Source: Ostrea edulis (lineage: Eukaryota). Taken from it: a DNA stretch of 64,000 nucleotides. Shown here piece by piece: positions 35,629 to 62,264 of the stretch (position 1 is its first letter; each line of letters opens with the position of its first letter). Under the pieces are notes generated by a model. That model made no database searches. It was not told where the DNA came from and saw only the letters and a list, made by a program, of their open reading frames with translations. The stretch covers positions 8,246,001 to 8,310,000 of the forward strand of contig NC_079167.1 of the NCBI RefSeq assembly GCF_947568905.1. The letters are read 5' to 3'. The position numbers were made by a program, and so were the translations under genes.

Positions 35629-35773
35629 AATCAAATCCGCTGAGATTCCTTTTATCTATTCAAATAAACCTTAGGGTCTCGGTGCTTTCATACCTCGATC
35701 GGTATTATCGATGATAATATATATGCCCGATTCGCCTCGGTGTCATAATAATTTATGCTTCGGGATATGCAAA

Positions 35774-36202
35774 ATGCGGCCCCTCTGGAGGCATTACTAC
35801 AAAAACAGTCAGGCATTGGTGTTTGTTTTCGATAGTGTTGACAGGGAGAGAATTACAGAAGCAAGAGAGTTACTTTATAGTATCCCTACAGAGGATGAAT
35901 TGAACGGTGTTCCTGTTGCTATTGCTCTCAATAAAAGGGATCTTCCAGACTGCATGACAAGAGAGGAGATGGTGGAAAAGTTAGATTTGAGGAAAATTCA
36001 GAAACAGAGACCCTGTGAAGCTTTTCTGACGACAGTTAAACCCACTGCTGAAGTGGACTCGGAATTTGATAAATTGTTGGAGTGGATTACAAAGGAAACA
36101 GCCAAAAGACGAAAGGCTTTTTCTCCGAAAAATCAAAAGGTGGACCCTTTCTCATACATTTGGCAACCAATAATGAAAGTGAAGAACATGATGTTTAACT
36201 GA
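35774..36202 (+). pseudogene. 5'-deleted, inverted duplicate of the ARF-like gene at 61626-62264 (residual 142-codon ORF)
   Basis: 35632-35766 matches the upstream region of the 62264 copy, then jumps (about 319 bp lost) to codon ~69, removing the ATG, P-loop, switch I and G3. The remainder differs from that copy by 15 substitutions and one 3-nt indel (manual count) and has no stops. Confidence 0.8.
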
Positions 36203-39060
36203 CGAGATTTGATATAAGTAGTAGAACTATCTACTAGGATTGGTCTTGAACAATTTCTAGAGTATTTTTTTTTTTTTTTAGAGACATGCCACGAAATTCC
36301 TAACAAAATCTCATGTGTAGAAAAACCGTTATAAATCAGTGACCACAATTAAGAGATAAGCGACGGCTACTATTAATCAGCATGTAATATGGTCCTATTG
36401 AAGCCATCGAATTCAAGACCGGACGGGATTTCTTGGCATGACTTCTAATAGTTAGATATTGTTATTGAAAAAATAAATGGATGATGTCACATACTTTTAT
36501 TTACAAGTTATGAAATAATTTCACAGACAGCGATACCTACACCATCTGTACCATGTGTTTGGACATTACACTTTTGACAATGAAGTTGACTAAAGCTCAT
36601 CACGTCCATTAATAATTTTCCGTTTGATGAAATTAATCTTATATCCAAGATTGTTAACAAACAATGTTATCAATTATCTGAAATTCATAGTGAATGTTCA
36701 AACCATTCTTCTCCATAGAGAAAACATTATCAACTGAATTAATTTGCAGTCAAGTTGTGGATTTGACACGGACATAGAAAACGGTGTTGAAAAAGCATAT
36801 TGTATAATGATAGAAACATTTGTGTACATGCATGTATATCTTAATGCATAATGCAGATAATGATATTACATGTAGTTAGCATTCAAACTATTGTAGAATG
36901 TTGTTTTGGTTTTTTCAGAAGTGGAAATTGTCGGAAATTTATATTAAAAAAAAAATTTAAAATTGATCTATTAAACAAAACAAAATCTGCATTGTGATGT
37001 ATTTTTTCTCCACAACATTGTTTTGTATAACAAATGAATTGACAGAAAAATTATGCTAGCCTAACATTTACACTTTAGAGTTCTAATGAATGGAAAAAAT
37101 AAGATTTCAGATGGTGAAATGGATTCATTTTACTTATGTACAAGTACATGGGCATGTATATGTTCAGTGTCCATTTTCAATTATTTCAACAACAAAAAAG
37201 TCCTTGAGAGTACATCAATGTTAATGAATTAAATTCAATAGTGTATGTGCCTTTTGAGGCTGTTGCCATGTAAGGTATCTCTTTGTTTCTTTCTGTTTTA
37301 TCTTGTGTACAATGTTGTGGATGTTACCATCGATGAATTGTCAACTGTCAATTGATAACGCCCATACTAACATTTAGGCAAATAATCATTTATAGGTATT
37401 CTTCAGAAGTTTTCCTCCATGCAAAATCTCTCTTTTTGAATACTTTCAGAGATAACGTATATGAACTGTACTAAACCTTATCCTGCAATGAATAAAAAAA
37501 AAAAGTACAGTTGCCAAATTCATAGTAACGTCCATACCAAAATTTAAGTTGATACGAAATCAGATACACTTGAGAAATCTGTTTCAAAACACATTGATAT
37601 AACAGAGATGGTCATTTTCATACATGTTTCAATTTTTGGACAAATAAATATGAAGTAACGTCCATAACATTTCCACAGGGTCCAAATAAATCAAAATGTC
37701 TCGAAAGTATGATGACAAACTATCTTTTCAGTTTCAAATCCTGGAAAAGCAATGATTGAACATTTGTTTTGTAAAAGAAAATATGCTAATTTTAATTCTT
37801 CGACTGTACAAATTAAAATTTCAGTTCATAAAAATTGTTGAATATCTGAGAATGACCCTTTAAAAAGTTAGTTGCTCCCTCTCTCTGTGTAGAACAGATG
37901 TTAACAATTATGCAGTTTACGTGCATAACTGGCGTATGACCTGCGTGTAAACTACAGGATACAGTACCAATCACTGCTGTAAATGTGATAACCGTGCAGT
38001 TAATGATATCTCAAAATGAAGGGCGCCGATTCTGTTAAAATTATCACTGTCGATTTCGTAATAATAAAAAATATTCTTCCGTGTTTCATGTTTTAATTGA
38101 CGAGTTACAGAGTTACAACATACAGAAATAAAGCAATTACTTTGTACATTGTATTAGAGAAAGGCATTTTTCATATTTAATCCCTAATTTGAATTATACA
38201 TCGTATATATACATTCTACATGTACATCGTTACATTGTTTTCGTTATGAAATGTCCTATGCTCTGATAAACTCCTTTACTCACAAGTACTCGTACAAGGA
38301 AAATTCAAACCATGAACAGACCACTTACTTACTTATACTTACTTGAATTAACATTGCTTGACCTGACTTTTACATACACATCTTATATCTCACATTTTAT
38401 CAAAATAACATAGAAATATACATTAAGTACAAGGCCCATTACAGTCTTTATGGCAGATCAACCCTCATGGGACTTATCAGACTTCATGGCTCAAAGCAGA
38501 AAAGTTGTATTGATTTCCTCTTACTATAGATTAATATATTCAATAACTGAAGAAAATATATATGTTGCCAGATTTTTAAAGATGTCAGTCATACAAAAAC
38601 AAAAGTTTACATCAACATCAAAAAGTCGCCACATTTTCATAGACATTAAATAGCATGATAAAAATATATAAAAACCTGGTTAAAATGACAAAATTTTAAT
38701 TTCATCAGTTTAAAAAAAAACTGCTTCTTTATAAAGATCTATGAATTAATTGTGGATATCAAGGAAATCATTGTATTATAACCGTATAATATATAAATAC
38801 CAGCATAGGAGTTATTGTCCTTGAAAACATTTTTGTGATATTATAGATAATTGATTATTTTATTTATAGAAAATATAAATCTCTTCAATATCAAATTGTT
38901 TACCAGATTTTCTTTTTTTATAATACCCAGTGAATAAGATTCCTTCTAAAGATAAATTTTTATCAAGCACAAATAATGAAATAAAGATTTTTCAAAAATC
39001 TATATGACTTCACACTTTATCCTATCTGCGTCATTCCTTTTACAGTTGAAATGCATGGCA

Positions 39061-39672
39061 TCAGTCAAACATTTTGTTTTTCATTTTCATTATTGGTTGC
39101 CAAATAAATGAAGAGAGAGAGCCCACTTTTTTATTTTTTGGAGATTCATTTTGACTTTTTCCAGTTTCTCTAGTAATCCACTCAAGAAATTTATCATTCT
39201 CCGTGTCCACATCAGAAGTTGGTTTGGTTGTCGTGAGAAAAGTTTCGCAAGGTCTCTGTTCCTGAATTTTTCCCAAATCTAACTTTTCCACCATCTCTTC
39301 TCTTGTCATGCAGTCTGGAAAATCCCTTTTATTGAGAGCGATCGCCATAGGAACGTCGTTCAAATCATCAACGATCAAAAAACTATGGAGAAAATCTCTT
39401 GCTTCCATAATTTTCTCTTTGTCGACACTATCGACAACTAAAACCAGAGCCTGGATGTTTGGGTAGATATATTTCCAGAGCGGCCTACTTCTGTCCCGGG
39501 TGCCAACAATCCACATCATCACATTCTCAGCACTGACCTCAACTGCTTCAACATTAATTCTTTCACCCGGTTTGAAATAACACAGAATGCTAGATTTACC
39601 TGCGGCATCTAAACCCAATATCAGAATTCTGCCACGATCCTGGCGGCGAAACTTACCAGTCTGGTTCCCCAT
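39061..39672 (-). CDS. Intronless ARF-like small GTPase, strongly diverged, 203 aa
   Basis: MG N-terminus, GLDAAGKS P-loop, RPLW, NKRD. About 9 residues of switch I are missing and G3 reads WIVGTR. C-terminal extension ends IWQPIMKMKNKMFD. Confidence 0.85.
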   Translation of the reverse strand: MGNQTGKFRRQDRGRILILGLDAAGKSSILCYFKPGERINVEAVEVSAENVMMWIVGTRDRSRPLWKYIYPNIQALVLVVDSVDKEKIMEARDFLHSFLIVDDLNDVPMAIALNKRDFPDCMTREEMVEKLDLGKIQEQRPCETFLTTTKPTSDVDTENDKFLEWITRETGKSQNESPKNKKVGSLSSFIWQPIMKMKNKMFD

Positions 39673-61039: not shown

Positions 61040-61392
61040 CAAATGATTTACAGTAACAATGTCCATACCACAGAAGAAACATACACTGCTGTCTACAAAA
61101 AGGAAGACAATAAACTAGGCTAACCTTTATATTGCACAAATGATAATTAATACATGTCAGTGCATACTTTTACGATAGACATAAAATAAATTATTAGAAT
61201 CTCCTATGCTGTGGAATTTTTGATTGCCATTTCTAATTTTATGATTTCTGAAAATGCATCAAATAACAGCAAAAGAAATTCTAAAGATATAAGATCTAAC
61301 AAGACTTAAGTAAATGGTATCACAGATCTGCATCAGTTAAAACACTGGTTGAACTGTTCAAGACAATTACTAGTAGATAGTTCTACTACTTA

Positions 61393-61611
61393 CCGTAGAA
61401 TCATTTAAATTCGTGGGGGCCAATTTTCGTGGATTGCTGAATTTTTTTCAGGTTCGTGGGGAAGTAATTTCGTGGATTTATATATTTGTATGAAAGATAA
61501 CTCTGGAATGTAATTATAATTCTTTATTCGTTGAGGATGTAAATTCGTGGGTGAGGGGTACCCACGAGTTCCACGAAAATTGAGCCACCACGAATTCTAA
61601 TGATTCCACAG
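61393..61611. mobile_element. 219-bp Tc1/mariner-type MITE, TA TSD, 14 nt downstream of the ARF-like stop codon
   Basis: TA|CCGTAGAATCATTTAAATTCGTGGGGGCCAATTTTCGTGGA ... TCCACGAAAATTGAGCCACCACGAATTCTAATGATTCCACAG|TA. The empty site is seen in the paralog at ~36205-36228. Confidence 0.9.
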
Positions 61612-61625
61612 TATATAAAATCTCG

Positions 61626-62264
61626 TCAGTTAAACATCATGTTCTTCACTTTCATTATTGGTTGCCAAATGTATGATGAGAAAGGGTCCACCTTCTGATT
61701 TTTCGGAGAAAAAGCCTTTCGTCTTTTGGCCGTTTCCTCTGTAATCCACTCCAACAATTTATCAAATTCCGAGTCCACTTCAGCAGTGGGTTTAATTGTG
61801 GTCAGAAAAGCTTCACAGGGTCTCTGTTCCTGAATTTTCCTCAAATCTAATTTTTCCACCATCTCCTCTCTTGTCATGCAGTCTGGAAGATCCCTTTTAT
61901 TGAGAGCAATAGCAACAGGAACACCGTTCAATTCATCCTCTGTAAGGATACTGTAGAGTAACTCGCTTGCTTCTGTAATTCTCTCCCTGTCAACACTATC
62001 GAAAACAAACACCAATGCCTGAGTGTTTTGGTAGTAATGCCTCCAGAGAGGCCGTATTTTGCCCCTGGTGCCTACATCCCACACTGTCAGCTCTGAATTA
62101 CCGAATTTCACTGTCTCTACATTAAATCCTATGGTAGGAATGGTCGTGACAACTTCTCCGAGTTTGTAATGGTACAGTATGCTGGTTTTACCGGCGGCAT
62201 CTAATCCCAGTATCAGAAGTCGAATGGGTTCTCGGCGACAAAGTATACTACTAAGGTTCCCCAT
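61626..62264 (-). CDS. Intronless ARF-like small GTPase (most ARF1-like copy), 212 aa
   Basis: MGN start, GLDAAGKT, KLGEVVTTIPTIGFNVETV, WDVGTRGKIRPLWRHYYQNTQ, DSVDRERI, NKRD, plus a C-terminal extension of about 35 aa. Confidence 0.92.
   Translation of the reverse strand: MGNLSSILCRREPIRLLILGLDAAGKTSILYHYKLGEVVTTIPTIGFNVETVKFGNSELTVWDVGTRGKIRPLWRHYYQNTQALVFVFDSVDRERITEASELLYSILTEDELNGVPVAIALNKRDLPDCMTREEMVEKLDLRKIQEQRPCEAFLTTIKPTAEVDSEFDKLLEWITEETAKRRKAFSPKNQKVDPFSSYIWQPIMKVKNMMFN

Follow-up and report, generated by a model that had tools for sequence, protein, structure and literature searches.

What are the products of a cluster of intronless ARF-like genes in which the catalytic glutamine has been replaced in every copy, and are such genes maintained or in decay? 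This question is raised by a stretch of 64,000 nucleotides from the oyster Ostrea edulis (contig NC_079167.1, positions 8,246,001 to 8,310,000; hereafter the window), in which an initial annotation had reported five intronless ARF-like copies within 27 kb. These copies belong to an array that extends beyond the window and whose members A to E are real genes under purifying selection, including the degenerate copies D and E. The family is thus real and selectively maintained, and it is not categorically new. From the residues and the tail described below, the array most likely falls within Arl20, an Arf1-derived group that occurs in unicellular holozoans and in several invertebrates and has disappeared from vertebrates (Vargová et al. 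2021, Genome Biol Evol 13:evab157; PMC8358228). As a whole, we consider it fairly probable that the array is an oyster-expanded, intronless branch of Arl20, in which copies A, B and C would bind GTP without hydrolysing it and copies D and E would be pseudo-GTPase-like.

A tandem array of single-exon genes under purifying selection

The open reading frames (ORFs) of the window include three complete ARF-like ORFs, all on the minus strand, intact and contained in a single exon: copy A (61626..62264, 212 aa), copy D (50941..51570, 209 aa) and copy E (39061..39672, 203 aa). Copy F, inverted on the plus strand (35771..36202), is a pseudogene from which an internal deletion has taken about 140 nt of the leader and the first 68 codons; its tblastn match with copy A (35771-36199) shows 94% identity over aa 69-212. 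Another dead copy is a decayed fragment on the minus strand (49894..50031; tblastn match 49909-50007), which corresponds to aa ~120-165 and contains two internal stop codons. The three full ORFs, the truncated copy F and this fragment account for the five intronless copies of the initial annotation. Two other copies, B and C, intact and of 212 aa each, are located 13 and 20 kb past the end of the window, and each is 94% identical to A. In total the array counts seven copies, of which five are intact, over about 47 kb, and all strong matches in the genome of the species (895 Mb searched) correspond to this single array (C4:8.28-8.33 Mb). Copies A, B and C have flanks in common (about 300 nt upstream and about 1 kb downstream), while D and E match them in the coding region only. 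Copy B adjoins an SLC5/SSF transporter gene head-to-head, with 516 nt between them up to the first coding exon of the transporter (L002:2137-3030, i.e. C4:8,328,814-8,329,707).

The four larger pieces of the window match the Pfam Arf profile (PF00025) far above its gathering cutoff of 22.3, with 180 bits for A, 115 for D, 104 for E and 85 for F (E-values of 3.6e-53 for A, then 3e-33, 6.5e-30 and 7e-24). The closest solved structures are true ARF1 chains (5.6e-52), followed by ARF4/5, ARF6 and ARL1. Since the best solved relatives are true ARF1, the family derives from Arf and not from a classical Arl group. In an ungapped HMMER alignment to the solved ARF1 chains, T66/R67 of copy A correspond to ARF1 G70/Q71. 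The ORFs and this alignment reproduced the switch II readings WDVGTR (A), WDTGSR (D) and WIVGTR (E) that had been proposed, with G70 changed to Thr or Ser and Q71 to Arg; copies B and C read WDVSSR and WDVGSR, so that all the copies of the array carry Arg at Q71 and Thr or Ser at G70. The alignment also agreed with the initial annotation on the two other motifs, G4 being NKRD instead of NKQD and G5 being TT[I/V/T]KP instead of TCAT, preceded by an insert of two residues. These substitutions recur in dozens of relatives and are not due to chance. In the genome of O. edulis, Arg at this position was found in the array copies only, and every other fetched ARF-like locus showing the motif has Gln.

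A true Arf is about 180 aa long, reads WDVGGQ (Gly70 and Gln71), NKQD and CAT, and has no C-terminal extension; the intact copies of the array have 203-212 aa, with a tail of about 35 aa, and none of these readings. Copy A, which is the least derived member of the A/B/C clade, is 52-53% identical to aligned canonical ARFs and resembles ARF1 and the other class I-II ARFs in its P-loop, switch I, interswitch and Gly2. The array copies differ from these ARFs in Q71R and G70T/S, in an N-terminal helix four residues shorter, in the tail and in a far faster evolution. Copy A begins with MGN and presents the P-loop GLDAAGKT, an intact switch I Thr, WDVGTR, NKRD, the G5 reading LTTIKP and a tail that ends in YIWQPIMKVKNMMFN. 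The P-loop of copy D is degenerate (LSLHAAGKS), its switch I is remodelled and contains a 2-aa insert, and 5 aa are deleted past switch II, while its tail is kept. Copy E is devoid of 10 switch I residues, including the Mg-binding Thr, and of the DxxG Asp, and it keeps the P-loop, NKRD and the tail. With their scaffold and tail kept, D and E look like pseudo-GTPases, and E in particular is a candidate for this status. The N-myristoylation pattern (PROSITE-type) is present in A, B, C and E and absent from D. In the oyster proteins the tail, DPFSxYIWQPIMKxKNMMF, is the best-conserved element outside the G domain; it is moderately hydrophobic, with a hydrophobic moment of 0.2-0.4 over the last 18 residues that is not decisive.

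We estimated the ratio of nonsynonymous (dN) to synonymous (dS) divergence by pairwise Nei-Gojobori comparisons, with bootstrap 95% intervals. Against counterparts from a related oyster, dN/dS was 0.24 for A (0.14-0.36; contig L032), 0.19 for D (0.12-0.30; L033) and 0.38 for E (0.26-0.58; L057), i.e. below 1 over the whole interval each time. Lower values were obtained between A and Saccostrea (0.10; 0.05-0.17) and between two scallops (0.15; 0.07-0.23), and the comparisons among A, B and C gave 0.26-0.59 with a wide interval. The neighbouring SLC5 exon of the same two oysters shows a comparable dS (0.32), which makes L032, L033 and L057 plausible orthologs or co-orthologs, and a dN/dS of 0.04. 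With a dN of 0.12 vs. 0.014 for this exon, the ARF-like genes change about eight times faster and are still constrained. Moreover, L033 keeps the odd P-loop, the remodelled switch I and the 5-aa deletion of D, and the counterpart of E (P0122, on contig L057) is also devoid of the DxxG Asp. D and E are therefore conserved paralog lines and not products of fresh decay.

These results bear on the simplest alternative, according to which A to E would be decaying processed pseudogenes with accidentally open frames. The copies are indeed intronless and scattered among transposable elements (TEs), F and the fragment are clearly dead, and a DIRS-like element lies just upstream of D. But the ORFs of five copies (203-212 codons) have remained open, each comparison between species gave a dN/dS significantly lower than 1, and the tail and the G1 and G4 motifs have been conserved in three oyster genera and in scallops. 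This explanation is largely refuted for A to E, and we hold it to be extremely improbable. The initial annotation had likewise taken the shared, retained substitutions as a sign against decay, in agreement with the ratios of 0.19-0.38 and the intervals below 1 found with the related oyster.

Relatives of the array and affinity with Arl20

By word search and alignment, full-length relatives were found in Saccostrea cucullata and S. echinata (72-73%), in Crassostrea gigas, C. angulata and C. virginica (57-67%), and on metagenome contigs from a related oyster (JGI 3300045951). Single-exon copies lie by the SSF gene in Saccostrea (three copies, L038), as do two copies in C. virginica (L039) and one on the JGI contig L032, and the end copy is head-to-head with SLC5 in four taxa. 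As copies adjoin the SSF gene in several oysters, the locus is orthologous across oyster genera. The absence of the motif from orthologous loci would have spoken against the initial annotation; the array is syntenic in three oyster genera and the motif family is present there. An exhaustive search of 1.84 billion representatives with a hidden Markov model (HMM) of the C-terminal 93 columns returned 11 matches, and those with an identified source were oyster or scallop proteins plus one unrelated repeat protein. C-terminal word searches also matched oyster or scallop proteins only.

The scallop genes (Ylistrum P0130 and Mizuhopecten P0159) are single-copy and single-exon, encode 215 aa and stand in another neighbourhood than the oyster locus. 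Their proteins read WD[VI]GGR, with G70 kept and Q71R, and NKQD, and end in FSYIKQVFSKV. Scallop and oyster proteins form one clade in our trees (support 99/96 and 100/97). The oyster proteins are split into two subfamilies, GGR/NKWD and G[TS]R/NKRD, and the window copies belong to the latter. The former is present in Crassostrea and Saccostrea; when it was sought in the O. edulis genome, no separate gene was found. Across the family, the ARF1 G70 position is occupied by G, T, S or F, and Thr or Ser is not the rule, since the related-oyster sequences L032, P0008 and P0009 read WDVGGR. Arg at Q71, for its part, is invariant in the bivalve members examined.

The same arginine was found outside bivalves. 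In a scan of switch II across the retrieved proteins, WDVGGR appeared in many bdelloid rotifer and metagenome proteins with a length of about 220 aa, and WDVGSR in a protein of the hemichordate Glandiceps (P0100), and all these Q-to-R proteins carry C-terminal tails. The best match of the Arl20-like P0100 in the O. edulis genome is the array itself. In the supplement of the paper that defined Arl20 (PMC8358228), Arg is found at Q71 in 9 of the 10 Arl20 sequences compared, Ciona alone having Gly, and all ten carry C-terminal tails. Their switch II reads WDVGGRDK in amphioxus, Capitella, Adineta a/b and Lottia b, WDVGGRGK in Saccoglossus, WSIGGRSG in Adineta c/d and WDIGSRDK in Lottia a. To judge from these sequences, scallops and published Arl20 have an old hallmark in common: the catalytic Gln is replaced by Arg, and the C-terminus bears a tail of about 40 residues. 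This pair of characters, which is our addition to the published definition, is shared by the array. Besides, the oyster proteins and Arl20 are alike in being Arf1-derived, in starting with MG, in the replacement of W78 in most members, in the aromatic or hydrophobic-basic end of an extension of about 35-50 residues, and in their absence from vertebrates, flies and nematodes. They differ in that the oyster genes are intronless and tandemly multiplied and have usually lost the DxxG glycine, read NKRD where Arl20 reads NKQD, and have a G5 remodelled with a two-residue insert. In addition, P-loop or switch I elements are missing from the oyster paralog lines D and E, and no alignment of the oyster tail to those of rotifers and the hemichordate was detectable.

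Several points weigh against this assignment. The definition of Arl20 relies on three intron positions that are specific to the group and on another that it has in common with Arf1/Arf4 (PMC8358228). The coding region is a single exon here, in Saccostrea and in scallops, and these introns are therefore missing, although intron positions cannot discriminate among intronless genes. In a tree that included bivalve, rotifer and hemichordate proteins, the bivalves join the rotifer Arl20-like proteins only weakly (85/80), and the hemichordate protein has no firm placement. Finally, a comparison of tail profiles between bivalves on the one hand and rotifers and the hemichordate on the other gave a probability of 3%, i.e. 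no significant similarity.

The same points would suit an independent retrogene family of Pteriomorphia, derived from Arf1 or Arf4, in which Q71R and the tail would be convergent and Arl20 would not be involved: single-exon genes in oysters and scallops are compatible with retroposition, the tail profiles have no detectable similarity and the tree support is weak. Such an origin would nevertheless leave three derived characters in common with published Arl20 to be explained, namely Arg at Q71, the replacement of W78 and a tail of similar length with a hydrophobic-basic end. The replacement of W78 even takes the same RPLYRHYY form in scallops, in the oyster genes of the GGR type, in acorn worm and in amphioxus. 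Furthermore, a single clade of all Q-to-R proteins was not rejected (approximately unbiased test, p-AU 0.27), and no further Arl20-like gene was found in the O. edulis genome, though limpet and annelid have one. One intron-bearing candidate, at C6:61.25 Mb, was rejected, this locus being Arf6. As for the missing introns, Adineta Arl20a/b are listed as '1 exon only' in PMC8358228, whose authors thus accept single-exon Arl20 genes. We regard an independent retrogene family as unlikely, though not negligible, and retain a probable affiliation to Arl20.

The 'lineage-specific' character that had been attributed to the subfamily is not supported in the form proposed. It does not apply to Q71R and the tail, which are found in scallops, bdelloid rotifers, a hemichordate and most published Arl20 sequences. 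It does apply to what oysters have added, namely the loss of the DxxG glycine (Thr, Ser or Phe), the erosion of G5 and the tandem expansion, with birth and death of copies; G70S itself also occurs outside oysters, in Lottia Arl20a and in Glandiceps. The text of PMC8358228, the only paper found to use the name Arl20 in a literature search, makes no mention of glutamine or hydrolysis, and nothing relevant was found on the C. gigas accessions or on an expansion of oyster ARFs. The family-wide loss of the catalytic glutamine has apparently not been pointed out before. The assignment also corrects the labels under which these genes stand in databases, namely 'ADP-ribosylation factor(-like)' or 'uncharacterized protein'.

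Some contigs and assemblies of the relatives deserve a separate mention. In ten runs, Crassostrea Logan contigs (L058-L067) contain a 208-aa GGR/NKWD ORF and a 211-aa SSR/NKRD ORF, head-to-tail and about 400 nt apart. The 5' ends of these contigs cluster within about 50 nt and two of them have adaptor remnants; the contigs may be transcripts, even bicistronic ones, or repeat-bounded DNA contigs. Similarly, the relatives' contigs from four public runs cover the coding sequence only and cannot tell RNA from DNA, and colinearity with the genome was seen for the Logan contig L031. Run searches returned no RNA run. In C. virginica (L039:3105-4144 and 10001-10607), a GGR-type gene contains an interruption of about 335 nt with a duplication of 11 codons, the gene model LOC111118205 leaves out 13 residues past the P-loop, and an ORF of 850 aa resembling the reverse transcriptase of a long interspersed nuclear element lies between the two genes. 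The L039 copies may be broken in that assembly.

Nucleotide state and possible roles

ARF1 Q71L is GTP-locked, and ArfGAPs insert an arginine finger next to Q71. Copies A, B and C have an intact P-loop, switch I Thr, DxxG Asp and NKxD, and are for this reason likely to bind guanine nucleotide. With an Arg in place of the Gln that positions the water, they would probably be unable to hydrolyse GTP, whether alone or assisted by an ArfGAP. The corresponding mutant of K-Ras, Q61R, is completely inactive in single-turnover hydrolysis and is not stimulated by the GTPase-activating protein (GAP) domain of NF1 (bioRxiv 10.1101/2025.11.04.686643). Moreover, an Arg already present at position 71 should repel the finger of the ArfGAP. 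By analogy, a non-hydrolysing, GAP-insensitive protein is the likeliest state. Among the three states that the initial annotation had put forward ('GTP-locked', 'switch-uncoupled' or endowed with an in-cis arginine), 'GTP-locked' would fit best. The MGN pattern predicts that A, B and C are probably N-myristoylated, and they could then be membrane adaptors that do not cycle and are mostly in the GTP form, their control depending on their amount and on the tail and not on a GAP. Our guess is that the tail provides a second element of binding to membranes or partners. The variability of the G70 position across the family indicates that this position no longer has its usual function as a sensor of the gamma-phosphate.

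Three considerations temper this proposal. Thr or Ser in place of the DxxG glycine could make the GTP-bound conformation weaker, in which case 'switch-uncoupled' would be preferable to 'GTP-locked'. The analogy with Ras for the hydrolysis defect may not be transferable to ARF. Lastly, the AlphaFold model is mediocre, with a mean predicted local distance difference test (pLDDT) score of 67 and values below 50 in the switches and the tail.

The in-cis arginine would make the copies active GTPases, the switch II Arg acting as their own finger. The invariance of this Arg in the bivalve members and its presence in most Arl20 do indicate that it is functionally needed. The K-Ras result points the other way, as the same Q-to-R change abolishes intrinsic hydrolysis there, and an Arg cannot stand in for the water-orienting amide. 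Besides, D and E keep the Arg despite their other losses in the catalytic site, which suggests a structural or binding role. In-cis catalysis is consequently disfavoured and appears improbable to us. A missing catalytic Gln is known from Rnd/RhoE, RhoH and ARL13B, which are constitutively GTP-bound or non-cycling, and the array is comparable to them and to Ras Q61R in this respect. These proteins belong to other subfamilies, however, and the additional change of the DxxG glycine in the array is unusual.

Arl20 is among the few ARF-family groups without known function, owing to its absence from vertebrates, flies and worms. The Arg found in nearly the whole group, together with the oyster series of increasingly degenerate but selected copies, leads to a testable hypothesis, namely that Arl20 proteins are non-hydrolysing ARFs. 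For biochemistry, the oyster array is a natural set of variants, with G, T, S or F at the G70 position and with or without switch I.

The differences among A, B and C are unevenly distributed: 11 of the 20 variable residues fall within residues 1-13 and 62-79, i.e. in the N-terminal helix and switch II, which represent 15% of the length (binomial p 3e-5; Fisher p 0.018 vs. synonymous changes). The local dN/dS is 0.56-2.07 in this hot spot vs. 0.13-0.32 elsewhere, but values above 1 are not significant, and 31 codons cannot separate relaxation from positive selection. The pattern was not seen in the comparisons of A with L032 and of D with L033 from the related oyster.

This hot spot is one argument for considering the copies as fast-evolving host-defence genes, whose products would mimic GTP-form ARFs and thereby be decoys or sensors of bacterial toxins needing or targeting host ARFs. 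The tandem birth and death of copies and the TE insertions in the array go in the same direction, as does the fact that the Vibrio MARTX MCF effectors require host ARF proteins (PMC6731672). Against such a role, the absence of the hot spot in the A-L032 and D-L033 comparisons means that relaxation in the younger copies B and C may explain it; the local excess rests on 31 codons without significance. Scallops hold one stable copy. The Pfam matches of the copies show no similarity to known immune GTPase families: they comprise Arf, Ras, SRPRB, Roc and similar small-GTPase profiles only, and no G domain of the AIG1, IIGP or GBP type (GIMAP, IRG, GBP). We see little chance that host defence is the explanation, and the immune role evoked in the initial annotation has found no support beyond the architecture of the array. 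A more elaborate version is slightly less probable still. Arl20 would be a natural 'Q61R-type' ARF, myristoylated, always in the GTP form and beyond the reach of any ArfGAP, and the oyster copies, graded from GTP-binding proteins to pseudo-GTPases and changing fast on the surfaces of the N-terminal helix and switch II, would supply decoys or tripwires for bacterial toxins and effectors obliged to bind host ARF-GTP, such as Vibrio MARTX MCF.

Neighbouring features and other ARF-like loci

The 516-nt spacer between copy B and the SLC5 gene is 78.6% conserved with the related-oyster contig L032. This conservation suggests that the two genes may share a bidirectional promoter. Copy A is flanked by two very high-copy repeats, at window positions 62972-63013 and 61393-61611, whose summed contig depth in run X7 reaches 4.9e5 and 1.8e4, respectively. 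The second one, of about 221 bp (61393..61611, no strand assigned), is inserted 14 nt past the stop codon of A; it is missing at the same site in B and C, and very high-copy in public runs. The DIRS-like retrotransposon occupies positions 52025-56734 (minus strand), between D and A. It contains a gag-like ORF of 561 aa, an ORF for reverse transcriptase and RNase H (RVT_1 8.9e-17, RT_RNaseH) and an ORF with a weak integrase SAM-like match. Another ORF within the array, of 288 aa (44893-45759, minus strand), has no Pfam match.

Elsewhere in the genome, two other ARF-like loci consist of a single open frame. The first, L007 (C4:89,292,977-89,293,507), which we take to be Arl4-like, encodes 182 aa with a basic C-terminus and WDIGGQ; the second, L008 (C7:24,285,607-24,286,029), presumably Arl6-like, encodes 188 aa and keeps the catalytic Gln. 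L007 and copy A are both intronless, but L007 retains the catalytic Gln, has a basic tail and shares 35% identity with A. Arl4 is an ARF-family member thought to stem from retroposition and mostly intronless (PMC8358228). Finally, at least six tandem exon sets at C4:92,337,000-92,363,000 (L009, L010, L012-L015, L020, L022-L027) read VKG[VI]SFTVWD[VI]GGQD.IRPLW. As this is the signature of Arl19 in the supplement of PMC8358228, a tandem expansion of Arl19 appears to be present on the same oyster chromosome.

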